NCBI GenBank assembly: GCA_002269645.1
Contig: NIVC01000093.1
Span: 124,001 to 188,000, forward strand
Source of the DNA: Macrostomum lignano
Lineage: Eukaryota
Reading direction: 5' to 3'
Length of the DNA stretch: 64,000 bases
The notes under the pieces were generated by a model. The model did not search any database. It was given only the letters and a program-made list of their open reading frames with translations, and had not been told where the DNA came from. Position numbers and translations under genes: made by a program. Within the stretch, counting starts at the first letter, position 1. Each line of letters begins with the position of its first letter. Positions 981-63,552 of this stretch are shown piece by piece.

Positions 981-3900
981 TCACCAGCGTCTCCCACGGG
1001 ACGCAGAGCTCCGGAACGAGGCTCTGAACTCAGTAGACCTGGTGCCACCTGCGCCGGTGGCCCTCTCGGCCAGGTAGCTGTCATAATTGGCCGATATTTT
1101 GCCCAGTTCGGCGCGTAGATTCTCCTCGAAATGCGACATCGATTCGTTGTCGGTGTCTCGCCGGCCTGGGATTAGCGGGATTGAATTTTTACTTCGGAGT
1201 CTTGTTCATGTGCAGAAGACTCTTATACTCTATCTCACAATCTACCTTACAGCAGGGTCTTTAGCACCAGGGGCTTTAGCACCAGGGGCGCCAGCACCAG
1301 GGGCGCCAGCACCAGGGGCGCCAGCACCAGGGGCGCCAGCACCAGGGGTGCCAGCACCAGGGGCGCCAGCACCAGGGGCGCCAGCACCAGGGGCGCCAGC
1401 ACCAGGGGCGCCAGCACTTGGAATCATTGGGAGAACAATAGAAGCGTCTAATGCTACTAATGCAGTAGTCTATCAACCTTGATGTAAAATGCTTTATTAA
1501 ATTTTTAACTTACTACTAGCATATAGAGCGCTGTAAGTAGTGGTACCAACAGCTCCTCCAGAGCCAATCGAAGACAGATAGTCCTCAAACTGCTCGTGCT
1601 GATGACGCTGCCTTGATGGCAGTGCCGGCCGGAAACTCACGGCCGGCAGTTCGGGATGATAGCGCCGACTTCCCGCCAAGACAGACCCCGATAGCTGACG
1701 CCCTTGGGCGTTCCGATAACTGCAGTTGCTTTCCTTATTGAGTAGGAAGATTTTATGACAGTTTTATTTAAACAAGTAAACCAATTTGTGGTGTAGCATT
1801 GAGCAGGTTTTTCAGTAAGCCTATGTTTAATGAAATGACCAAACTATACGTAAGGTCTCTTCGGTAGGAGACGCCATTCAGATCATCCTACGGTGACCTC
1901 ATCCCACGGTGACCTCATCCTACGGTGACCTCATCCTACGGTGACCTCATCCTACGGTGACCTCATCCTACGGTGACCTCATCCCACGGTGACATCCCAC
2001 GGTGACCTCATCCCACGGTGACCTCATCCCACGGTGACCTCATCCTACGGTGACCTCATCCTACGGTGACCTCATCCTACGGTGACCTCATCCTACGGTG
2101 ACCTCATCCTACGGTGACCTCATCCTACGGTGACCTCATCCTACGGTGACCTCATCCTACGGTGACCTCATCCTACGGTGACCTCATCCTACGGTGACCT
2201 CATCCTACGGTGACCTCATCCTACGGTGACCTCATCCTACGGTGACCTCATCCTACGGTGACCTCATCCTACGGTGACCTCATCCTACGGTGACCTCATC
2301 CTACGGTGACCTCATCCCACGGTGACATCCCACGGTGACCTCATCCCACGGTGACCTCATCCCACGGTGACCTCATCCTACGGTGACCTCATCCTACGGT
2401 GACCTCATCCTACGGTGACCTCATCCTACGGTGACCTCATCCTACGGTGACCTCATCCCACGGTGACATCCCACGGTGACCTCATCCCACGGTGACCTCA
2501 TCCCACGGTGACCTCATCCTACGGTGACCTCATCCTACGGTGACCTCATCCTACGGTGACCTCATCCTACGGTGACCTCATCCTACGGTGACCTCATCCT
2601 ACGGTGACCTCATCCCACGGTGACCTCATCCCACGGTGACCTCATCCCACGGCGTCCGCGTGTATCCCTGTGTATAAAATTTTGAGCAGGACATCTTAGC
2701 GCCGCTTTCCGAGGAGCGAAGTTGAGAGTTTGATAAACGGCTTACCAATTTTATTTTCTCCAATTCTTCAAGCTGATGCCGGAGCCTTTTGGCCACATCA
2801 ATGGCTGCTTGGCAGACGAGACTTGCTGGCACCAGTCCCTTGTCCAGGGCCCGCTGTAGAATGGCTTCGCTGCATCTGTTCAGATTCAGGGCATCGAATA
2901 CTTGCTGACGCTCTGACTCGGGCGGCGACGGATCAGCTGGGGGATCACAGTATGTACAGCACGGAGATTATTGGCGAATTCGAATAATCCTAGGAAACGT
3001 CTTTAGCAGTCAGTCCCAAACCAATCCTTCACAAACTAATTCTTCACAAACCAATGCTTCACAAACCAATACTTCACAAACCAATGCTTCACAAACCAAT
3101 ACTTCACAAACCAATGCTTCACAAACCAATGCTTCACAAAACAATACTTCACAAATCAATGCTTCACAAACCAATGCTTCACAAACCAATGCTTCACAAA
3201 CCAGTCCTTCACAAACCAATCCTTCACAAACCAATCCTTCACAAACCAATCCTTCACAAACCATTGCTTCACAAACCATTGCTTCACAAACCAATCCTTC
3301 ACAAACCAATCCTTCACAAACCATTGCTTCACAAACCAATACTTCACAAACCAATGCTTCACAAACCAATACTTCACAAACCAATCCTTCACAAACCAAT
3401 CCTTCACAAACCAATCCTTCACAAACAAATCCTTCACAAACCAATCCTTCACAAATCAATACTTCACAAACCATTGCTTCACAAACCAATCCTTCACAAA
3501 CCAATCCTTCACAAACCAATGCTTCACAAACCATTGCTTCACAAACTAATCCTTCACAAACCAGTCCTTCACAAACCAGTCCTTCACAAACCAATCCTTC
3601 ACAAACCATTGCTTCACAAACCATTGCTTCACAAACCAATACTTCACAAACCAATGCTTCACAAACCAATACTTCACAAACCAATCCTTCACAAACCAAT
3701 CCTTCACAAACCAATCCTTCACAAACCAGTCCTTCACAAGCAGACTGGCTCACCAGAGAGCAGGGCCTCGGCCGCCTCGTACAGAGTATCGTGGCTGGTC
3801 CGATAGTCTGGCGGCATGCTGGCTGCCAGTTTGATAAAGTCGGCCACAGGAAGCCCCCCAGCCCGGGCCAGATCCAGCAGGTGACAGTCAATCACGCACG

Positions 3901-5131
3901 AGAGGACTTCGGGCACAACGCCGTCATTTTTCACAGTGTTCTCCACAATCTCGCACAGTACAGGGGCCGGCGTGTCTCTGAGTTCGTCCTGGGTGAAGCG
4001 GTGCAGCGCGCCGCCCGCCAGTTGCAGCAGTTTGGCGCGACACTCCGGGCTGGCCGTCTCGCTAACGCGAAGCGCTCGTCGAATCCAATCGGCATTGATC
4101 GACTCGGACAGCGGCGTGTCCGCTGGCAGGGCGAGAATCACCCTGTCGAGTACTTCGACGCCGGATTCTCTGGTTAACTGCTCACTGGATTTTTCGTCGG
4201 CTTGTTTATCCAATCGGTCGTCGTGGTCCTCTTCCTGGTCTTTGTGATCATCTTTTTCCGCGTCGGCCTCGCGCTCCGGTGGCGTTGGCGCCTGCTGCGG
4301 CGGGTTCAGGTGCTGGCTGAAAGCTTGATCCAGGTAGCGGGCGGCCAGCTCAGCCAGCGGTCGTCGACGCAGATGGGCGTTCGTTTCGGCGTTCAACTCG
4401 TCCTCGGTAGTGGTGGCAGCCGCGGCTGAAGACGAATCTGACGGGCAGACAGCTTGGATCAGTTGAAGGAATCGAGGCAAAGGCAGGCTCAGCAGATGAT
4501 TCTCAGTGTCGCGCTGCTGCTGCTGCTGCTGCCTGCTGGAGTACGGAGAAGAGAAGACGCGGTAGTGGTGATGGTGCCGGTAGAAGCGCTCGTCACTATC
4601 AGAGCTGAGCGCGGCAGCGGCAGCCGCCGAAGCCTCTGCCCGATGCCAGATGTCCAGCAGCGCGGCGAGACACCTCTCTGGAAGTTTCGTTTCGTCAGTT
4701 GGCCGACCGATGGAGCCGCAGCTGGTCAGCAGGTCGACAATGGGGCCGGCCGATTGGCCGACCTTGGCCGAATCAAGCAGCTCGCTGAGGTACCGGTCAG
4801 TCAGGTCGGCCAGGTTGCCTCGGCCGCGCATTGCCAGCCGTTCGGCCGCGCAGTGCAGTTGGACGACATTGTCCGGCGAGATGTCGATTCGTTTGTTGTA
4901 GCAGAAATCGGCAATCAAGTTGAAGCAATCGGCCCCGCCGGGAAAGTCCGATTCGAGTTCGAGCTCGGACACACTGGAATCGGCCAGGAGTTCGCGGAAT
5001 CGGTCAGATTTGATGAAGAGCGGGAACCGGTGCAGCTTCCACTCAGATTTGACGCCGTCAGCGGCAAGTCGGACCGTGAGGTCGGAGAGTTCACCAGAGT
5101 CTCGGTAGCGGAGAAGATCTTGGACTGGCAT
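981..5131 (-). CDS. BTB/POZ + NPH3-domain protein (NPH3/RPT2-like), ~657 aa, 4 coding exons
   Basis: Exons (minus) 5131-3754, 2936-2746, 1733-1514, 1165-981; all GT-AG, phases 1/0/1 consistent, total 1974 nt. BTB motifs LHRFPLFIKS, FPGGADCFNLIADFCY, NVVQLHCAAERLAM, GNLADLTDRYL. NPH3-type C-terminal motifs VIDCHLLDLA...DFIKLAASMPPDYRTSHDTLYEAAEALL and ESERQQVFDALNLNRCSEAILQRALDKGLVP. An acceptor at 5167-5169 implies an upstream exon or trans-splicing; the start Met (5131) and the last two exons are less certain. Confidence 0.85.
1262..1417. repeat. 15-bp minisatellite (GCACCAGGGGCGCCA), ~10 copies, BTB gene intron 3
   Basis: Tandem units read directly. Confidence 0.95.
1884..2652. repeat. 16-bp minisatellite (CGGTGACCTCATCCTA), ~48 copies, BTB gene intron 2
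   Basis: Tandem units read directly, with CCTA/CCCA variants. Confidence 0.97.
3020..3740. repeat. 15-bp minisatellite (CTTCACAAACCAATN), ~48 copies, BTB gene intron 1
   Basis: Tandem units; source of the spurious LHKPI/VCEGL ORFs. Confidence 0.97.
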
Positions 5132-5695: not shown

Positions 5696-5825
5696 GCAAT
5701 CCCAGATGTAGCTGGCAACAGAGCTTTCACGTCTTCCTAACGATCCCCGTAACTTTACCACGTTGTCCTTAGAGTCCAGTCCGTAAGAGGCTGCCTTGAG
5801 ATTAGTGATTTTTCTGCTTAGTGTG

Positions 5826-6302
5826 TCAGGATTGACGATTAATGAGTCAGGATTGAGGATTAATGAGTCAGGATTGAGGATTAATGAGTCAGAATTGACG
5901 ATTAGTGAGTCAGGATTGACGATTAATGAGTCAGGATTGAGGATTAATGAGTCAGGATTGACGATTAGTGAGTCGGGATTGACGATTAATGAGTCGGGAT
6001 TGACAATTAATGAGTCAAGATTGACAATTAATGAGTCAGGATTGAGGATTAATGAGTCAGGATTGACGATTAATGAGTCAGGATTGACGATTAGTGAGTC
6101 AGGATTGACGATTAGTGAGTCGGGATTGACGATTAATGAGTCAGGATTGACGATTAGTGAGTCGGGATTGACGATTAATGAGTCAGGATTGACGATTAGT
6201 GAGTCGGGATTGACGATTAATGAGTCGGGATTGACGATTAATGAGTCAGGATTGACAATTAATGAGTCAGGATTGACAATTAATGAGTCAGGATTGACGA
6301 TT
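5826..6302. repeat. 21-bp minisatellite (TCAGGATTGACGATTAATGAG), ~23 copies
   Basis: Tandem units read directly. Confidence 0.95.
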
Positions 6303-6799
6303 ATCATTGACGACCCTTTCTGTGTCAGGAACTGCCGGATGTTTTGCGTCAATAGTGCCAGTCAGTGCCTTTTTGTGCGACAACTTGAGCAATGAAGATG
6401 ATCAAGGGGCAGAGAATCCGATAAGGTTGACAGGGGTGAGGCTTAAGTAAATTATTCAGGTCGGACTTTTCTCTTGGGATAATGCAGTTCTCTGACTCTC
6501 TATCTACTAGGCTCATTTCCCAAGGGAAGTGTGATTCGAAGAGCAGGCCTCGGACATAACTGTGGCATTTCTATTGGAGAAGCAAATTTATATTGTACTT
6601 TCTTGCTATCTGAAGGAAATGACGCCTCTCTGACTGCAGCATTTTCTGTCTTCAGGCGTTAATTTTTAATCAGGGGCCTTTCACGATGCATTAGTGTAAT
6701 AACCTCTGAGTCTGCTGATTCATGCGTGCGCAATATAGTTTATGGCCTAACCTGACCTTTCTTCCTTTTAATATTGATGATTCTCCGATAATAGTTTCA

Positions 6800-7920: not shown

Positions 7921-8535
7921 TCAGTGTCTGAGTGTCTCATTGTCTCAGTGTCTCACAGTCTCAGTGTCTCAGTGTCTGAGTGTCTCATTGTCTCAGTGTC
8001 TCACAGTCTCAGTGTCTCAGTGTCTCACAGTCTCAGTGTCCCAGTGTCTCAGTGTCTCAGTCTCAGTGTCCCAGTGTCTCAGTGTCTCAGTGTCTCAGTC
8101 TCAGTGTCCCAGTGTCTCAGTGTCTCAGTGTCTCAGTGTCTCACAGTCTCAGTGTCTCAGTGTCTCAGTGTCTCAGTCTCAGTGTCCCAGTGTCTCAGTG
8201 TCTCAGTGTCTCAGTCTCAGTGTCTCACAGTCTCAGTGTCTCAGTGTCTCAGTGTCTCAGTCTCAGTGTCCCAGTGTCTCAGTGTCTCAGTGTCTCAGTG
8301 TCTCAGTGTCTCAGTGTCTCAGTGTCTCAGTGTCTCAGTGTCTCAGTGTCCCAGTGTCTCAGTGTCTCAGTGTCTCAGTGTCTCACAGTCTCAGTGTCTC
8401 AGTGTCTCAGTGTCTCAGTCTCAGTGTCCCAGTGTCTCAGTGTCTCAGTGTCTCAGTGTCTCAGTGTCTCAGTGTCTCAGTGTCTCAGTGTCTCAGTGCC
8501 CCAGTGTCTCAGTCTCTCAGTGTCTCAGTGCCTCA
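7921..8535. repeat. 8-bp-based satellite (TCAGTGTC) with variants
   Basis: Read directly. Confidence 0.95.
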
Positions 8536-9127
8536 GGCCCGCAGTGCAGTGCCTTAGGGTTTCAGTGACTTGGTGTTTATATTTTTAGTGTTCTATACTG
8601 TCTGAAAAGTCTATAAGTTATGTTTTTATGGCGGATTAGAACAACATAAAGTTCCAATGTCGTTTAGTCCCTCTGTCTCGTCGTAATAATGTTAGGTTAG
8701 TGTCGGGTTCCTCGCATCAAAGCCTTACAATCTCAGTAAAAGCTCTGAGCCTCATGGCTGACTGTTTAGCAGCTTCAGCGCCACTGACCTGAGAGTAAAC
8801 TCGAACATGCCGGACTCTCCAGTCCGCCTCAGGGAAAGAGGCGGGCTGCAACCGTGAGGCAGATCCTGAAAGACGCAGAAACAGGATCTGGAGACGAGGT
8901 TGAGAAGATGGAGAGAGAGAGAGAGCCAAAGAGAGGGGAGGAAGCGGACTGAGCCGGGGGCCGAGGATATGAAGGGGTCACATATAGGAGAGAAAAATCT
9001 TCGAGGTGGAAGGACTGAGACGCGTATGTAAAAACGCATTCGAACCATACCTCTCTCTCAAGCTGTCTTCATCGGTGTCATATTTAATAGCTATAGTTGA
9101 CTTTTAGCTTCTCAAAACTCAGATATA

Positions 9128-10021
9128 ATGGTGTCTAAGCAGCACTTTGCCGCAGTCCTGACCAGCCTGGCAGCCTTCACAGTGTTGGCGGCCCTGACCA
9201 GCGGTCAGTCAGGCAAGTCCGAACTGCCAGACTGTCCCAGCAACGAGTCAGTTTGCAACGCTGTGCTGCACTTCCCGGACAGAATAGTGGATCAGGGCCG
9301 CTACTGCAACGGCTGCGTGAACTGCGCCCTACCGTCGGCTGAGTCGGACATCCCGGGCACTCTCGCCGCGATGTCCGAGCGCAGCTTCTACTGGCAGCAC
9401 TGGGAGGACCCCAACATGCGAGTGCAGTTCGTCAAGTGCAGCCCGATGCCCAAGCGAGCCAGGTGCAGCCTCGCCGACCAGAAACCGGCGGCGGTCTTTG
9501 CCAGCCCGATGTCCACCTGGAGTCCCCGGCTGCTGCAGTACCGCTGCAACTGCCCGGACGCCCAGTTCCAGCTGAGGTCCTGGCGGCCGGCCGAGAATGG
9601 CGCCGACTGGCACTACGACTTCCACTGCCACCTGCCTGTCTGCTCGGTGGCAACCGCCGACAGCGAAGGAACCCCTGCAGCTGGCCTCGACTCGACTCGT
9701 CGCGACGCCGACGATGACGTTTGCGTTGTGAAACGTCGTGCCAGCGAGAATTCGCCATCTAGCGTGGAGTTCAAGTGCACCTGTCCGCCCGAGTATCACT
9801 GCGTTATCAAGGAGGTTCAAACGAAGAAGCCGGCTTCAGAGCATCAGGGACACGCCGGCGGAGGCGGCGGTGGCGTCGGCGGCGGAGGAGACGGCGGAGG
9901 AGGCGGCAGCGGAGACGAGTCGGAATGGAGGGCCGACCCAGTGGGCGGCGGGCAGATCAGCCGGCGAAGATGCCAGAAGACGCACCATCAGAGCGGGGCG
10001 AACTCGACCACCGGGCATTGA
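9128..10021 (+). CDS. Secreted cysteine-rich protein, Argos/giant-lens-like (297 aa, single coding exon)
   Basis: Uninterrupted GC-rich ORF. N-terminal signal peptide (MVSKQHFAAVLTSLAAFTVLAALTSG). 16 Cys in the order LPDC..SVC..YCNGC..NC..VKC..ARC..RCNCP..FHC..PVC..DVC..KCTCP..YHC..RRC, matching my recollection of the Drosophila Argos pattern. The ORF is secure; the family assignment is inference. Confidence 0.7.
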   Translation: MVSKQHFAAVLTSLAAFTVLAALTSGQSGKSELPDCPSNESVCNAVLHFPDRIVDQGRYCNGCVNCALPSAESDIPGTLAAMSERSFYWQHWEDPNMRVQFVKCSPMPKRARCSLADQKPAAVFASPMSTWSPRLLQYRCNCPDAQFQLRSWRPAENGADWHYDFHCHLPVCSVATADSEGTPAAGLDSTRRDADDDVCVVKRRASENSPSSVEFKCTCPPEYHCVIKEVQTKKPASEHQGHAGGGGGGVGGGGDGGGGGSGDESEWRADPVGGGQISRRRCQKTHHQSGANSTTGH

Positions 10022-11905: not shown

Positions 11906-14900
11906 CTAATCCAATCCAGCCGCGTCATTGTCCATGGCATTTTCTAAGAAATAGAAATTCTCTCGAACCAACTGCTGGCAGCTGTCGTAGCTGAGCAGGC
12001 AGTCGTGCAGAGCCGCCAATTCCGACTGCACAGCTAGCGAGTCCGGATCGCGCCTGGGAAATACGGTGGAGGTCAGCAGCTTATCTAACAGGTAGTGCAG
12101 CCACATCAGATTTGTTCGAGGATTGAATTTGCGCCAATCGTCTGAGCAGTCGCGGCGCATCATTCGGTACACCTGCGTGGGTTTTGGATGGGTGTTGGGC
12201 AGCGTGACTGGTGCTGATGCAGGCTCAGTGTCTGTACGGACAGACACAGTCAATACAGACAGAGACACAGTCAATACAGACAGAGACACAGTCAATACAG
12301 ACAGACACAGTCAATACAGACAGAGACACAGTCAATACAGACAGACACAGTCAATACAGACAGAGACAGTCAATACAGACAGAGACACAGTCAATACAGA
12401 CAGAGACAGTCAATACAGACAGAGACACAGTCAATGCAGACAGAGACACAGTCAATACAGACAGAGACACAGTCAATACAGACAGAGACACAGTCAATAC
12501 AGAGAGAGACAGTCAATACAGACAGAGACACAGTCAATACAGACAGAGACACAGTCAATACAGACAGAGACACAGTCAATACAGAGAGAGACACAGTCAA
12601 TAGAGACAGGGACACAGTCAATACAGACAGAGACACAGTCAATGCAGACAGAGACACAGTCAATACAGACAGAGACAGTCAATACAGACAGAGACACAGT
12701 CAATACAGACAGAGACACAGTCAATGCAGACAGAGATACAGTCAATACAGACAGGGACACAGTCAATACAGAAAGAGACACAGTCAATAGAGACAGGGAC
12801 ACAGTCAATACAGACAGAGACACAGTCAATGCATACAGAGACACAGTCAATACAGACAGAGACACAGTCAATACAGACAGAGACACAGTCAATACAGACA
12901 GAGACACAGTCAATACAGACAGAGACACAGTCAATACAGACAGAGACACAGTCAATACAGACAGAGACACAGTCAATACAGACAGAGACACAGTCAATAC
13001 AGACAGAGACACAGTCAATACAGAGAGAGACAGTCAATACAGACAGAGACACAGTCAATGCAGACAGAGACACAGTCAATACAGACAGAGACACAGTCAA
13101 TACAGACAGAGACACAGTCAATACAGACAGAGACACAGTCAATACAGACAGAGACACAGTCAATACAGACAGAGACACAGTCAATACAGACAGAGACACA
13201 GTCAATACAGACAGAGACACAGTCAATACAGACAGAGACACAGTCAATACAGACAGAGACACAGTCAATGCAGACAGAGACACAGTCAATACAGACAGAG
13301 ACACAGTCAATGCAGACAGAGACACAGTCAATACAGACAGAGACACAGTCAATACAGACAGAGACACAGTCAATACAGACAGAGACACAGTCAATACAGA
13401 CAGAGACACAGTCAATACAGAGAGAGACAGTCAATACAGACAGAGACAGTCAATACAGAGAGAGACACAGTCAATACAGAATCGGATACAGACACAACCA
13501 ACGCAGTACATTCTACTAGTAGTAATAGATAAACAATGAGATCACCTCAAACTGGTAGTCGCCATCGCCAACAAAGATGCCCTCGTCGCCGGACATATCA
13601 ATATAAAGCACGTAGCCAGGCGCCGGGCTGACCCGACTAACAGTGAAATCAATGATAGCCACTTCCAGGCCTTCGCAATTGATTGCGTAATTATGATCGG
13701 CCACTCGGTAGCGGATTTTAACCCGGCCAGACCGGCGGACCAGCACATTGTTCCAGTGCAGGTCGCGGTGCTCGAACTGGAACTGCGACTCGGCGGCGGC
13801 CAGAGACAGGGCCAGCTGGAGGATCACGGAGCGGGCCTCGCGGTAGCAGCCGAAACGGAAGGCCGGCAGGGGACAGCCCGCGAATCTTTTTGGGGAAGGA
13901 TTATGAGTCTTTGAATACATATGAGTCATGATTTATGAGTCATTGAATATATATGGGTCATGAGTCATATGAAATATTGAATATATAAGGGTCATTGGTT
14001 ATGAGTCATTGAATAGATATGGGTCACGACTCATGGATTATGAGTCATTAAATATGTATGGGGCATGAGTCATACGAGTCATCGAATAGATATGGGTCAT
14101 GAGTCACTAAATATATATGGGTCGTGAGTCATATGAGTCATTAAATACATATGGGTCGTGTGTCAGAAATTATTGAATAGATATTGGTCATGGGTTATGA
14201 GTCATTAAATACGAGTATATATGAGTCATGAGTCATTGAATACGATTATATATGAGTCATGAGTCATTGAATACGAGTATATATAGGTCATAAGTCATGA
14301 GTCATTGAATACATATGGGTCATGATCAATTGGCTATATGATCATAGAATGAAATTGAGGAAAAAATTAAAAAGATTACGTATATACTACTTACTTGTAC
14401 TCCAGTAGTAGCCACTGCTGCCTTGCCGGTAGAAATTCCGGATTTTCGTTATCAGACACTCGAACTCCGGCATTAAACGCTTCCCACTCCTCGGACAGGC
14501 GGGGGTGCAGTTTACCGCGAACAATGCTAGCATTGAGCAGCTGGACAAAGTTACCAGTTTTATTACTCCGATACCTATAGGCCAGGTTAGTCAGCTTGCG
14601 AGAGATCAACAGTTCAGGCAGGACTTCGTCGAACATTTTCTGCGGTTCGCAGTTCACCAGCTGGCCGCCCTCGATAGGGAACAGTTTCAGGGCCACCTCC
14701 TGGCGACCGCGGCGAGTGGCGTAGACCTCGCCGTAGACGCCTTCGCCAACTTTGTGCAGGCCGTCCAGCATCTCCTGGGATAGGGCGTCCTCCCATCTGG
14801 AGTGTGTGAAGGAGAAAGAATTTGATGAAAGAACCTAATCTAAGAACTAAAGAACTAATTCGGGGCTAAATTGGAATCTCGGCTTGGCTCTGCTCGTGCA

Positions 14901-16559
14901 GTAAACGCCCAGCTTGAGGGACAAACCATGAAGTGTACATGCCTAACCATAAATAAAGCTAGGGTCGCTGTACACTCCTGTGTGAGTGTGTGCCTGCTCA
15001 GGGGAGTCGGCGGAATGGGTCGGTTGTGTGTGACAATGTCGCCTAAAGTGCGCCAGGATACACACAGTCCATTCTCTGCTCTTCTAATTGGCGCCCATGT
15101 ACATGTCTCAAGGGGTATCTTAGTTGATGTGACCGCGCACAGAGGGTAGGTCTCAATTAGTGTAATTCTGTGCGTCATGACGCATCAACTTTTAATTTTT
15201 TCATCTCGAATTTCAACCCTCAGATGCCGAATTGACAGGCTGGATTCTTCTTCCAAGCTGGATACTGATTGATTTAAGTTCCTTGTTAATTTTAGCTACT
15301 GGGATTACAAGACTTCAAACTCCGACTCCGCAGCGCAGCGCACACAAGCTGTCTTTCTCTTGATCGCATCTCTTAGACAAAGAAATCTCTTGTACAATCT
15401 ATTATAAGCAGCAGACCCACCTAACGCAGTCGTTCTGACGGCACAGCCGCAATACGCAGTCGCGATATTCGCACTGCTGATAAAGTCGCCAATAGCTCTG
15501 TTCCAAAGATTGATCCAATAATTTCTCGTCGTCTTCCAAAGCAACATTGGCGGAAGCATTCACTGGCAATTTATGACAGCGCTTGCTAGGGGACAGGTCA
15601 GTCTCGAGATCAACGCCACTAGCATCGTGTTGACTACTACTATTAGTATTATTGTTATCACGCTCCTCCTGTTGTCGATTAGCGATAGCGGCTGCAACGC
15701 CTGCGTCAACTTCGATACGACGTTTAGCGACGCGTTTCAATTTTCGAGCCATATCCTGCTGGCTACTATTAGTAGCAGAAGTAGTAGAAGTAGCCACCGA
15801 TTGTTGGCTATTTCTAGCAGCTGCAGCTGAGGCGGCGGCACCGTTGCTATGCTTCAACTCGGAAGAAGCGGACGCGGCCAGAACGGCAACAGGCGACAAT
15901 GGCGACAGAGCTACAATGGCCGCTCTGAGCAACACGTTAGTAGCAACAGATTCGTTATTCTTCGACGATGACAGATGATTGACAGCTTCGTCGCAAGCTT
16001 CCAGACAGGGTGGGGATAGCGACTCCTGACGATCGGGCTGCTGGCTTTGCTGGCTGCGAAGATTATAATTACTAGCGGCTCGACGAGTTCGCCTAGTTGG
16101 CATGGGAGTCGAACTCGGGACTGCGACCTGTTGTCGATCAGCGGCTGTTAAAATCGGCGGAGGCAGCGCTTCCGACGTAGACGGCGCAGCTTTTCTACGT
16201 TGAGATTTTTTACCTGTCAACTGTTTGACTGGCGAAACGGCCTGACAACTATCGTCTGACGAGGTGATTGCCGCGAAAGCAGAAGACGAAGCCAAAGAAG
16301 AAGCAACAGAAGCAGCGGCGCTGCTTTGCTTTTGCTGGCGTTTCTTTTTTGAGGATCTTAAATTGCGTCTCAGCGGCGGTTTACGAGAATTAGACAGTGA
16401 GGAATTAACTGATGAAGACTCGGCGGACAAAGAGTCCATTGCCCGACTATTGGCAGTCAGCATTGCGGCCGTGGCAGCTGCGGCGGCGCATCGTCGAAAG
16501 CCTGGACGACGAGTTGTTGAGGTCGTCGTCGACAAAGACGAGGAACCCCTTTTAGGCAT
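11906..16559 (-). CDS. GSG2: Haspin serine/threonine kinase (histone H3T3 kinase), ~715 aa, 4 exons
   Basis: Exons (minus) 16559-15421, 14796-14395, 13885-13546, 12172-11906; phases 2/2/0, total 2148 nt. Basic low-complexity N-terminus, then [66 protein letters not shown], which are haspin-specific kinase motifs. Confidence 0.93.
12240..13480. repeat. 21-bp minisatellite (CACAGTCAATACAGACAGAGA), ~59 copies, Haspin intron 3
   Basis: Tandem units with 19-bp variants. Confidence 0.97.
13915..14340. repeat. Degenerate ATATGGGTCATGAGTCATTGAAT repeat, Haspin intron 2
   Basis: Recurrent motif with variable spacing. Confidence 0.8.
14857..15085 (+). mobile_element. 5'-truncated copy of the same SINE, in Haspin intron 1
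   Basis: Shares GGGGCTAAATTGGAATCTCGGCTTGGCTCTG, TGTACACTCCTGTGTGAGTGTGTGCCTG, CTCAGGGGAGTCGG and TAAAGTGCGCCAGG with 27486-27720; lacks the tRNA-like head. Confidence 0.7.
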
Positions 16560-16744
16560 GCCCGCTGATGAAGGGCTTCGGTTTTGATGTAATTAATTGT
16601 AAGCTGCGACGATGAAAGCGCGGTTTGAGCAGATAAGGCCAGACAACAGAAAATATCGCTGCGGGATAAATAGACTTCATTTTTGTCTTTTTAAGTAAAC
16701 TGCGTTTTAAGAAATTTGATTGTATAAAACTGATGAATAAGAAA

Positions 16745-16790
16745 GCAGACAGACAAACAGACAAACAGGCAGACAGACAGAAGGACAGAC

Positions 16791-16841
<51 letters not shown>

Positions 16842-16862
16842 TAGACAGACAGACAGACAGAC

Positions 16863-16897
<35 letters not shown>

Positions 16898-16898
16898 A

Positions 16899-16929
<31 letters not shown>

Positions 16930-16930
16930 A

Positions 16931-16975
<45 letters not shown>

Positions 16976-17045
16976 CACAGACAGAGAGACAGACAGACAG
17001 ACACACAGATGCACAGACAGACAGACAGACAGACAGCCAGACAGA
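16745..17045. repeat. (GACA)n microsatellite
   Basis: Read directly. Confidence 0.95.
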
Positions 17046-17819
17046 CGACAGTCAAAGACACTAAATCGGCTACTCCAATCAAGTTAAAATGAAAACCACA
17101 GAAAGCCGGCCATAAATCAAGTGCTAGGTCGTCAAGGGTTTTTATTCAAGCAGACAGTATAAACTGTAGTTGACAGTTAAATAAAGCTGGGTTCGTAATT
17201 ACAGAAACGGGATGACAGTGAAGATTAAATAAACTAATACTAAAACTTAAACAACATTAGTTTGTTAAATATTAAACAGTCAAATGTAAGTGTCAGTTTT
17301 ATAATACATGAATAACGTATTTAGTAAATAAAGTAAATAAGTTGTATATTACTAGTAATAATGAATTGTACTGTACTGCGAGACACTAAATTATTTGTAC
17401 AATTGCAACTGACACACTGAGACATTTGATATATAAGTAACTAAATTCAATTTGCACCGGATAAAACTACGGCAATAGACAAATATAAAGTTGGAAAAGC
17501 TGAAGAATATATTATACTACAATTTTTTTAAGTTAATAAGCACGATTATAATACGCTCGTAAAACAAGAAAAGCGCATTTAAATAAATTATTAACGATGA
17601 CGCCAAGATAAGAGTAAAGGAAATGAGTTTTATTGGTTACTGACAGCGAGCAGAAGGTAAGATATAAGGTAGAGAGCAGAAAAATGATTTTTTTTGTTTT
17701 ACAAAACAAATAATTAGTGTCATTACAATGGCATGCATGATTACGAGCAGTGGTAACTATAAAAAAACTATAACTTTCCACGACTCAAGCTTTTTTATTA
17801 TTACTGCAAATCAATTAAG

Positions 17820-18753: not shown

Positions 18754-30831
<12,078 letters not shown>

Positions 30832-41671: not shown

Positions 41672-60601
<18,930 letters not shown>

Positions 60602-60699
60602 GTGAGCAGATTGACTAGCTGAATCGGAGGATGCCATTTTCGGTAGATCTGTAGACCTGGTATTAGATGTCTATAGATTTAGCATGAAATTTAGATAAA

Positions 60700-61470
60700 T
60701 CTATAGATCTGGCAGTAGCTATACCTATAGATCTGACAGTAGCTATACCTATAGATCTGGCAGTAGCTACACCTATAGATCTGGCAGTAGCTACACCTGT
60801 AGATTTGGCAGTAGCTACACCTATAGATCTGGCAGTAGCTACACCTGTAGATTTGGCAGTAGCTACACCTATAGATCTGACAGTAGCTACATCTATAGAT
60901 CTGGCAGTAGCTACACCTATAGATCTGACAGTAGCTACACCTATAGATCTGGCAGTAGCTACACCTATAGATCTGACAGTAGCTACACCTGTAGATTTGG
61001 CAGTAGCTACACCTATAGATCTGACAGTAGCTACACCTATAGATCTGACAGTAGCTACACCTATAGATCTGGCAGTAGCTACATCTGTAGATCTGACAGT
61101 AGCTACACCTATAGATCTGGCAGTAGCTACACCTAAAGATCTGGCAGTAGCTACACCTATAGATCTGGTAGTAACTACACCTATAGATCTGGTAGTAACT
61201 ACACCTATAGATCTGGTAGTAACTACACCTATAGATCTGGTAGTAACTACACCTATAGATCTGGTAGTAACTACATCTATAGATCTGGTAGTAACTACAC
61301 CTATAGATCTGGTAGTAACTACATCTATAGATCTGGCAGTAGCAGATCTGGCAGTAGCTATATCTATAGATCTGGCAATAGTAGCAATATTTATAGATCT
61401 GGCAGTAACTACATCTGTAGACCTGATAGTATTCTATAGATCTTGTGGTAATATATAGATCTGACAGTAG
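60700..61470. repeat. 24-bp minisatellite (ATAGATCTGGCAGTAGCTACACCT)
   Basis: Tandem units read directly. Confidence 0.96.
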
Positions 61471-61946
61471 TTGCAATCTATCAATCTGAAGGTCAATCAA
61501 ATCTATAGATGCGTTTCATCCATGTATAGATAAATCTATAGATTTAGAAGTAGATAAATCCTTAGATCTGAAGCATTATAAACTAACAGATCTAGAGATA
61601 AACTAAATCTGCAGAATCCCTCTGACCCTAGTAGACCTAAAGAGTCCCTAAAGTTCAATCTTAAGTAAATCGTTAAAATTTCGATGAAGTAAAGTTTACT
61701 TATTAAATCACTCAAGAAAAGTTTCTGTAAGCAATATAAAAAATTGGCATTTTAATTAATTTTATGGTCAGGCATCTCCTCACCGCCTCTCATAAAAAAC
61801 AGCTACTGCTCTTCTCCCCCAAAACTTCACCTGTCAGACCTGTCATTGATAGCATTTTATTGGTCTCAGCGATCTGACAGCTGGTAAGCCTCGGGGCCAG
61901 TCCGTCCATCTAGCTAATTAAATTCACTTTTAGCCTTGCCTTGCCG

Positions 61947-62367
<421 letters not shown>

Positions 62368-62719
62368 TCTTGCTTGCTCCAAGAAGCGTGGCGTCTCCAG
62401 GCCCAGCAAAAAATCCCACCACTAGTCCATGGACAGTCAATTGATTGATTGGCCTCAGACCCCAAGCAGTGGCTTGGAAATTATGAAAGAAGAGAAAATG
62501 AAGAGAACGAGAGAGACACAGAGAGAATTACTTGATGAAGCTGAGAGGCTGACAGACTGGGCCCTCCTATACTGAAGATGTCGTTCCCCCGTAGACATCT
62601 ATTGGAGCTGTAAAACAGTGAATCTGAGGATGTCATTGCAGATAGGACTGTAGATCTGTTGTATTAGATATTTCTATAGATCTAGCAGTACATGCAGATA
62701 AATATATGGATCTAGCACT

Positions 62720-63552
62720 AATCTATAGATCTGACAGTAGCTACACCTATAGATCTGACAGTAGCTATACCTATAGATCTGACAGTAGCTACACCTATAG
62801 ATCTGGCAGTAGCTACACCTATAGATCTGACAGTAGCTACACCTATAGATCTGGCAGTAGCTACATCTGTAGATCTGACAGTAGCTACATCTATAGATCT
62901 GGCAGCAGCTACCCTTATAGATCTGACAGTAGCTACATCTATAGATCTGACAGTAGCTACATCTATAGATCTGGCAGCAGCTACCCTTATAGATCTGACA
63001 GTAGCTACATCTATAGATCTGGCAGTAGCTACACCTATAGATCTGACAGTAGCTACACCTATAGATCTGGCAGTAGCTACATCTGTAGATCTGACAGTAG
63101 CTACATCTATAGATCTGGCAGCAGCTACCCTTATAGATCTGACAGTAGCTACATCTATAGATCTGACAGTAGCTACATCTATAGATCTGGCAGCAGCTAC
63201 CCTTATAGATCTGACAGTAGCTACATCTATAGATCTGGCAGCAGCTACCCTTATAGATCTGACAGTAGCTACACCTATAGATCTGACAGTAGCTACATCT
63301 ATAGATCTGGCAGCAGCTACCCTTATAGATCTGACAGTAGCTACACCTATAGATCTGACAGTAGCTACATCTATAGATCTGGCAGCAGCTACCCTTATAG
63401 ATCTGACAGTAGCTACATCTATAGATCTGGCAGCAGCTACCCTTATAGATCTGACAGTAGCTACACCTATAGATCTGACAGTAGCTACACCTATAGATCT
63501 GGCAGCAGCCACCTTTATAGATCTGGAACTAATTTATAGATCTGACAGTAGC
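62720..63552. repeat. 24-bp minisatellite, same family as 60700-61470
   Basis: ATAGATCTGACAGTAGCTACACCT and variants. Confidence 0.96.

Follow-up and report, generated by a model that had tools for sequence, protein, structure and literature searches.

A BTB-NPH3 protein gene of the flatworm Macrostomum lignano as a probable animal branch of the family known from plant NPH3 and RPT2

In plants, NPH3 is a CUL3-associated adaptor in phototropin signalling, where it works together with the phototropin kinases; the NPY proteins function with AGC kinases at the cell cortex. The C-terminal R-x-S-x-S-COOH of plant NPH3 and RPT2 is a binding site for 14-3-3 proteins. Papers on this plant family describe the NPH3 domain as plant-specific (PMC11313873, PMC1257465, PMC4327156). 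Here we analyzed a stretch of 64,000 nucleotides from the flatworm Macrostomum lignano (assembly GCA_002269645.1, contig NIVC01000093.1, positions 124,001 to 188,000 of the forward strand; the whole stretch is referred to below as the window), in which a plant-type BTB-NPH3 gene had been predicted. Frame and splice-site analysis placed one gene of four exons on the minus strand at 5131..981, with the ATG start at window position 5131, the end of the stop codon at 981 and a product of approximately 644 amino acids (aa). Our results indicated that this product is very probably, as judged from its sequence, a BTB-NPH3 protein that shares homology with the plant NPH3/RPT2-like (NRL) proteins along its entire length. 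Furthermore, the locus is likely to be a bona fide and probably functional gene of M. lignano, which represents an animal branch of the BTB-NPH3 family outside the streptophyte clade.

The domain composition of the protein carried this identification. A Pfam scan with the 523 aa encoded by exons 1 and 2 detected a BTB/POZ domain at aa 8-102 (4826..5110, minus strand; PF00651, 25.9 bits against a cut-off of 20.5) and an NPH3 domain at about aa 205-517 (2764..4519, minus strand, spliced across intron 1; PF03000, 48.7 bits against a gathering cut-off of 27, E 1e-12), the best stretch of which, aa 411-482, corresponded to profile positions 183-254 of 258. BACK, Kelch and zinc-finger families were not reported for the window protein by hmmscan at E up to 10. 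The comparison by hhalign of a profile of eleven animal members, including the window protein, with a profile of seventeen streptophyte members gave a probability of 100%, an E of 7e-58 and 440 collinear columns at 25% identity; it spanned query 14-504 and template 34-525, starting at the first strand of the BTB and stopping where NPH3 ends, and the alignment with the plant NRLs extended through aa 517 of the window protein. Fifty positions had an identical consensus residue in plants and spiralians, distributed across the BTB, the linker helices and the NPH3 core, and the NPH3 core was the best-conserved part between the kingdoms. The motifs on which the original prediction had relied were all located in the translation of the minus strand, with LHRFPL at aa 33-38, FPGGADCFNLIADFCY at 63-78, NVVQLHCAAERLAM at 88-101 and GNL at 105-107, as well as VIDCHLLDLARAGGLPVADFIKLAASMPPDYRTSHDTLYEA from aa 413 and then SERQQVFDALNLNRCSEAILQRALDKGLVP across intron 1. 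Its reading of these motifs as a plant-type BTB-NPH3 protein was borne out by the Pfam BTB and NPH3 matches above their cut-offs and by the profile-profile homology to plant NRLs over the full length. At the level of sequence, the gene falls within the BTB-NPH3 family in the wider sense, outside every plant NRL subfamily.

The gene structure could be followed from the start codon to the stop codon on the minus strand. Exon 1 (3754..5131) begins with the ATG at 5131-5129 and forms an uninterrupted frame of 1378 nucleotides, which encodes aa 1-459 plus the first base of codon 460 and contains the BTB and the helical linker together with most of the NPH3 domain and a disordered insert rich in acidic residues and Q; tblastn with P0002 and P0004, both M. 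lignano paralogs, and with the homologs from the nemertean and the abalone covered window positions 5131..3743. The donor of exon 1 is GTGAGC at 3753. The phase-1 intron 1 (2937..3753) has GT..AG borders and the acceptor ...CCCCCAG, and Tandem Repeats Finder showed that almost the whole of it consists of a 15-bp minisatellite in 48 copies (3017-3739). Exon 2 (2746..2936, aa 460-523), detected by tblastn with P0001, P0002 and P0004, supplies the end of NPH3 and the start of the long C-terminal helix (...SERQQVFDALNLNRCSEAILQRALDKGLVPASLVCQAAIDVAKRLRHQLEELEKIKL), and its donor is the consensus G|GTAAGC. In intron 2 (1695..2745, phase 0 in the preferred model) the same program found a 16-bp minisatellite in 49 copies (1883-2652). 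Exon 3 (1514..1694 in the preferred model, obtained from a frame analysis of four models) encodes a disordered Ser/Arg-rich tail, LSGSVLAGSRRYHPELPAVSF...YSALYAS. Intron 3 (1166..1513, phase 1; donor GTAAGT, acceptor ...CCCAG) carries 10 copies of a 15-bp minisatellite (1263-1417), and exon 4 (981..1165; open reading frame (ORF) 981..1139, stop codon 983-981) encodes the C-terminal tail ending in ...RASFRSSASRGRRW. All three introns thus hold minisatellites of 15-16 bp, in agreement with their earlier description as repeat-filled, and these are of the same kind as those in the rest of the window. The 16-bp unit of intron 2, TCATCC(C/T)ACGGTGACC, also recurs in 3.8 copies at 534-596, approximately 400 bp past the 3' end of the gene; the same minisatellite family is therefore present inside and outside the gene.

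For the border of exon 3, the acceptor 1694/1695 (model A) holds the frame through to ...RRW, and the C-terminus of the protein in this preferred model is ...SRGRRW. Three features of the paralog P0004 favoured model A: it has an intron of phase 0 at the equivalent position, its next exon begins with DEIRSGSRFARRSEPPSAVSG, which matches LSGSVLAGSRRYHPELPAVSF of the window, and it also has a phase-1 intron at ...LL(S/G)|. The resemblance of the window's LSGSVLAGSRRYHPELPAVSF is to RSGSRFARRSEPPSAVSGF of P0004, located at the start of the corresponding exon of the paralog.

Further members of the family were found elsewhere in the M. lignano genome. P0001 (A0A1I8J8Q3), an N-terminally truncated model that runs into intron 2, matches aa 152-523 of the window protein with 97% identity. 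The M. lignano paralogs, four or more in number, are 29-59% identical to the window protein; P0002 lies on a 721-kb scaffold and P0004 on the 883-kb NIVC01000052.1 of the same assembly (GCA_002269645.1). Two intron positions, together with their phases, are shared between P0004 and the window gene, namely the phase-1 intron at ...LLGSG|KSIP and the phase-0 intron. P0004 (L002 6001-12259) consists of six exons; exon 1 of the window gene is continuous where P0004 has introns after aa 211 and after aa 400, which indicates intron gain or loss among the flatworm paralogs. No second copy of the family was found by tblastn within the 64-kb window. The GC content at third codon positions (GC3) of exon 1 is 0.70 compared with 0.46-0.79 for the neighbouring genes; as it falls within their range, it argues against contamination.

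The family is not confined to Macrostomum among animals. An exhaustive profile search of 1.84 billion cluster-representative proteins yielded 1133 proteins at E<=1e-3, of which 99 reached E<=1e-30; taxon names were assigned to 30 of the 150 listed matches, and the taxonomic spread described here rests on those 30. They included the nemertean Tubulanus polymorphus, the annelid Owenia fusiformis, the gastropods Haliotis cracherodii, H. rufescens, Physella acuta and Littorina saxatilis, the flukes Opisthorchis felineus and Paragonimus, the monogenean Cichlidogyrus casuarinus, the bdelloid rotifer Adineta vaga and the homoscleromorph sponges Corticium candelabrum and Oscarella lobularis, with the streptophytes Psilotum, Selaginella, Physcomitrium, Chara braunii and Mesotaenium among the later matches. 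The next-best matches after the animal clade were streptophyte NRLs, not KLHL or ZBTB proteins. The first seventy or so matches aligned from their own residue 1, like the flatworm protein, and later ones had an N-terminal extension. The scaffolds bearing the animal homologs were mostly 0.6-85 Mb in size. A word-indexed homolog search yielded only Macrostomum and sponge proteins, the other phyla and the plants coming from the exhaustive profile search; low-complexity words probably crowded its candidate list. Six homologs from the nemertean, the annelid, gastropods and the rotifer gave Pfam NPH3 scores of 50.6-67.3 bits, and in Haliotis, Physella and Littorina the match covered profile positions 1-255. 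The Pfam NPH3 model does not detect the fluke and sponge homologs; a profile-profile comparison of sponge and plant sequences gave a probability of 100%, an E of 8e-42 and 427 columns.

Several observations on the search results may be added. In Corticium candelabrum, at least seven members (P0080, P0140, P0162, P0178, P0179, P0186, P0187) were located on one scaffold of 9.05 Mb, and their close LOC numbers suggest a local expansion. A well-separated AT-rich clade (P0058, P0059, P0066, P0068, P0073, P0076, P0084, P0132) was made up only of JGI/ENA metagenome contigs of up to 22 kb, and its members showed repeated ...NLI.(M/V)A(G/S)(D/E)IL... units where the acidic insert would be. In the literature, the name 'NPY2-like' in Conus referred to a neuropeptide.

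Phylogenetic analysis separated the animal sequences from those of plants. A neighbour-joining tree was built from 134 sequences (392 columns, 100 bootstraps); in it, the streptophyte clade, with Chara and Mesotaenium basal to land plants, was recovered in 100/100 bootstraps, as were the land plants and the sponge clade; the parasitic-flatworm clade received a bootstrap of 78 and the Macrostomum-type clade one of 75. The streptophyte clade left out every animal sequence in 100/100 bootstraps. Since no animal sequence lies inside the plants, a recent plant-to-animal transfer was rejected. The choice originally offered, an old eukaryotic family or an old horizontal transfer, is upheld by the occurrence of spiralian and sponge clades outside the streptophytes and by the exclusion of a recent transfer. 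Judged from the named sequences only, descent from a remote common ancestor followed by numerous losses is about as likely as an ancient transfer between the stems of streptophytes and animals. A more far-reaching reading is that BTB-NPH3 is an old eukaryotic module, at least as old as the sponge-bilaterian ancestor and possibly older than the plant-animal split, which survived in sponges and Spiralia and kept the core activity of the plant NRLs, either CUL3-linked or as a trafficking/polarity scaffold, independent of phototropin and auxin. We regard this reading as possible but, taken as a whole, on the unlikely side. If it is true, the approximately 50 residues common to both kingdoms would mark the core function of the NPH3 domain, and a flatworm that is transgenic and tractable by RNA interference would become a second system for finding that function.

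Structure prediction was consistent with a BTB followed by a helical protein. AlphaFold2, with an alignment of 17 sequences as input, produced a model with a predicted local distance difference test score (pLDDT) of 81.6 and a predicted template-modelling score (pTM) of 0.72, in which the BTB (strands at 18-33 and 56-59 plus helices) is followed by helices only. The NPH3 region of this model is all-helical with pLDDT mostly 85-94. Disordered loops were predicted at 180-195 and 281-319, the latter (approximately aa 281-319) being a low-confidence acidic loop within NPH3, and a long helix at aa 497-522 breaks off at the donor of exon 2, where other animals continue ...LR.EL.S.K.I..MQ.EEL.... Foldseek against the PDB retrieved the BTB domains of BCL6, KEAP1 and ZBTB proteins, those of BCL6 and KEAP1 with a TM-score of up to 0.80 by target length and a root-mean-square deviation (rmsd) of 1.7-2.6; the PDB sequence matches were BTB domains of ZBTB, BCL6 and KLHL proteins. 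In addition, the KEAP1 BTB with its following helices (152 columns) and the vaccinia A55 BTB-BACK chain from its CUL3 complex (157 columns) were aligned, the matches to the two proteins covering 149-157 columns at rmsd 4.5-6.9; these alignments are longer and looser than the bare BTB match of 99-123 columns. When the NPH3 part was modelled alone (pLDDT 78.4), its best PDB match had an E of 1.5e-3. Foldseek found no solved relative for the NPH3 part in the PDB, only generic or designed helical repeats with a TM-score of at most 0.32, and neither sequence nor fold searches of the PDB found a solved structure of an NPH3 domain.

For the function of the window protein, we tentatively propose a CUL3-adaptor mechanism by analogy, to which we give slightly less than an even chance. 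The BTB would most likely dimerise and dock CUL3, as in plant NPH3 and the animal BTB adaptors; the NPH3 helical domain would form a partner- or substrate-binding module, and the disordered tail with its basic-aromatic end may serve as a regulatory or docking element replacing the 14-3-3 site of plants. The proposal was made because Foldseek aligned KEAP1 and the A55 chain of the CUL3 complex beyond the bare BTB.

A different function would follow if NPH3 were a trafficking-associated GTPase or a RAB/SNARE-binding module of the NRL5 type, acting in membrane trafficking or polarity instead of serving chiefly as an adaptor for CUL3 substrates. Animals have conserved RABs and longin VAMPs, and the superior conservation of the NPH3 core between kingdoms would also suit such a module. 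Arabidopsis NRL5 has been reported to hydrolyse GTP and to bind RABs and VAMP721/722, but the same paper defines no nucleotide-binding motif that could be checked for in the flatworm protein (PMC11313873). Moreover, a GTPase or RAB role in animals would be carried over by analogy with Arabidopsis, and the predicted model is all-alpha, with Foldseek finding no GTPase relative for its NPH3 part; a predicted structure of this kind, with no solved GTPase-like relative, neither supports nor excludes GTPase activity. We consider the NRL5-type function, the strongest competitor of the CUL3-adaptor function, rather unlikely, and the CUL3-adaptor function somewhat less so. As to the identity of the protein, an ordinary animal BTB protein of the BTB-BACK-Kelch or zinc-finger (BTB-ZF) type with a spurious NPH3 match might be suspected, since the best single Pfam NPH3 stretch reaches only profile positions 183-254 of 258 and the PDB sequence and fold searches yielded only BTB matches. 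However, no BACK, Kelch or zinc-finger family appeared up to E 10, 440 collinear hhalign columns joined the animal members to plant NRLs at E 7e-58, and the sequences following the animal clade in the search were streptophyte NRLs rather than KLHL/ZBTB proteins; this identity was refuted by the nearly full NPH3 matches of the gastropods (profile positions 1-255) together with the hhalign result, and we assign it practically no probability. The original prediction had named the lack of an NPH3 match, or grouping with BTB-BACK-Kelch proteins, as what would overturn it, and neither occurred. Contamination from a plant or alga, a chimeric contig or recent gene transfer from a plant into the flatworm would accord with the description of the family as plant-specific in the plant literature (PMC11313873, PMC1257465, PMC4327156). 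Against this stand the 97%-identical copy and several paralogs in M. lignano, the matching intron positions of P0004, host-type minisatellites in the introns, animal flanking genes with a GC3 that is ordinary for the locus, an identity of only ~25% to plant profiles, orthologs on megabase scaffolds of many animals, and a streptophyte clade without animal sequences in 100/100 bootstraps. The probability of this whole group of explanations is negligible, and contamination or a chimeric contig at the window locus is not credible; the view that this is an animal locus and plant contamination unlikely, held from the start, is confirmed by the copy and paralogs, the animal neighbours, GC3 and the two intron positions in common.

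The reading of the locus as a functional animal BTB-NPH3 gene also has to be set against several points that weigh on the other side. The 5' border of exon 3 is the least certain part of the gene model: the strong donor at 2746 combined with the stronger-looking acceptors 1719/1720 or 1728/1729 leads to a premature stop, these acceptors stay in frame only if splicing uses GTCCTG at 2693, a weak donor (models B and C), and the preferred acceptor 1694/1695 has a poor pyrimidine tract. The gene model of this copy is, in addition, built from genomic sequence alone. All spiralian-type sequences formed one clade with a bootstrap of 34 in the neighbour-joining tree on 392 columns, and the spread of the family in cnidarians, deuterostomes, ecdysozoans and protists is not covered by the 30 named matches. 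Furthermore, we know of no phototropins or PIN carriers, the partners of plant NRLs, in animals; the plant pathway therefore cannot be carried over, and the conserved core must serve something more general. CUL3 docking and dimerisation of the window protein are predictions by analogy, as any membrane association would be. The uncertain splice site bears in particular on whether the window copy could be a decaying duplicate, that is, a pseudogene of a functional paralog. M. lignano has many duplicated genes and a 97% copy exists, the most canonical splice choice between exons 2 and 3 (model D) hits a stop codon, and the presumed coiled coil that follows NPH3 does not reach the length seen in other animals. 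On the other hand, exon 1 retains an open frame of 459 codons, the residues invariant among five aligned Macrostomum-clade relatives are all kept, and the in-frame model reaches the conserved ...RRW C-terminus and agrees with the intron phases of the paralog. We judge a pseudogene to be improbable.

The C-terminal tails differed between the two kingdoms. R-x-S-x-S stood at the C-terminus of 24 of the 50 plant sequences and of none of the spiralian-type C-termini listed. Conversely, a terminal [RK][YFW]-COOH was present in 12 of 46 long spiralian-type sequences (chance expectation about 0.4), compared with 0 of 50 plant sequences. This terminal pair recurs in nemertean, annelid, gastropod and rotifer homologs, and the Macrostomum paralogs terminate in ...SSRKW and ...RSRRW. 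The basic-aromatic pair may be regarded as a candidate docking or regulatory motif. As a separate observation, many animal members, one protein of the sponge clade among them, have a short Y(F/W)P(Y/F) motif a few residues ahead of the C-terminus; it is carried by P0015, P0021, P0022, P0025, P0145, P0027, P0018 and P0144 and is absent from the window protein.

Automated database labels for such animal proteins are already known, and the gene belongs to a known family, here in an unexpected lineage. Automated plant-named annotations in some marine invertebrates had been mentioned beforehand, and such an entry exists at NCBI: XP_046334247.2 of Haliotis rufescens, named 'BTB/POZ domain-containing protein At5g48800-like'. 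This abalone protein is a full-length homolog with a Pfam NPH3 score of 65.9 bits, and its name is machine-given, as is that of the M. lignano UniProt entry A0A1I8J8Q3, 'NPH3 domain-containing protein'. In the literature searched, we found no papers joining NPH3 with Macrostomum, metazoa, spiralian taxa, sponges or horizontal transfer, and none dealing with these database entries. The occurrence of full-length BTB-NPH3 proteins in sponges and many spiralian phyla contradicts the plant-specific label and implies an earlier origin of the module, through inheritance from a very old common ancestor or through an ancient streptophyte-animal transfer. The biochemical role of NPH3 is unclear in plants as well, and residues kept across kingdoms without a common phototropin or auxin-carrier pathway point to a core activity. 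For flatworm biology, an uncharacterised family of at least four genes is added, which by analogy are putative ubiquitin-ligase adaptors.

The neighbouring genes identified in the window are of animal type. A haspin-like kinase gene with at least three exons (11906-14771, minus strand) gave Pfam Haspin_kinase scores of 91.4 and 46.6 bits, and its intron at approximately 12.3-13.5 kb is packed with tandem repeats. C2H2 zinc-finger exons (zf-C2H2_4, zf-C2H2 and zf-C2H2_jaz) with repeat arrays between them occupy 20126-26672 on the minus strand and may belong to one large zinc-finger gene or to several. The teneurin that had been noticed in the window was verified by an EGF exon at 60415-60618 on the plus strand (EGF_Teneurin, 65.8 bits). 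Other ORFs of this likely teneurin gene, at 41672-42178 and 51586-51840 on the plus strand, spread it over more than 19 kb, only the EGF exon being verified; these are a Q/P-rich N-terminal ORF and an ORF with a hydrophobic, transmembrane-like stretch. At 9128-10021 on the plus strand, an ORF of 297 aa has a hydrophobic N-terminus resembling a signal peptide, many cysteines, a Gly-rich tail and a GC3 of 0.78, and it gave no Pfam match. A very large share of the window consists of short-period tandem repeats, several of them inside introns of neighbouring genes, and many of the repeats yield long spurious ORFs such as (SVCL)n and (TDRQ)n. Examples are found at 5818-6303, 7924-8588, 12123-13539, 16552-17092, 21009-22028, 24001-24933, 50676-51733, 53080-53809, 59728-60622, 60691-61500 and 62706-63539.

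Among solved structures, the window protein can be compared with the BTB-BACK CUL3 adaptors KEAP1, KLHL3/11/22 and vaccinia A55, with which it has in common a BTB fold followed directly by helices; it differs from the animal adaptors of this type in having no Pfam BACK or Kelch, and its helices after the BTB have no significant solved structural relative. The sponge proteins (LOC134178830 and others of Corticium candelabrum, and XP_065835738.1 of Oscarella lobularis) are full-length matches to the flatworm profile at E 1e-34 to 3e-44, and their ...IDFTKLSQDALERAAQN..IP block is very near the plant ...CQKLS.EAC.HAAQNERLP block. They differ in that LPGG replaces FPGG and in that the coiled coil is followed by a further conserved stretch of ~150 aa (G.W ... 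P.F..YD ... RRL..W), which is absent from spiralian and plant members.

Compared with the plant NRLs, for which Arabidopsis NPH3, RPT2, NCH1, NPY/MAB4 and NRL5 were considered, the identity is only ~25% and the animal sequences fall into separate clades. The window protein lacks an N-terminal extension ahead of the BTB, contains an acidic/Q-rich insert inside the NPH3 region, and does not end in R-x-S-x-S-COOH, a site that is typical of plant members and is not part of the Pfam definition. At the same time, the BTB signatures LHKFPL, FPGG..F..A.FCY, N(V)..LRCAAE.L.M and NL are common to both, as are the NPH3 signature D.YL..A....L....F..LA...P...R...D.LY and the ...LS.E....A.....P... block. 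In the flatworm protein as in the plant NRLs, the parts follow one another in the same order: first the BTB at the N-terminus, next a helical linker and the NPH3 domain, and finally a long helix with a disordered tail behind it.

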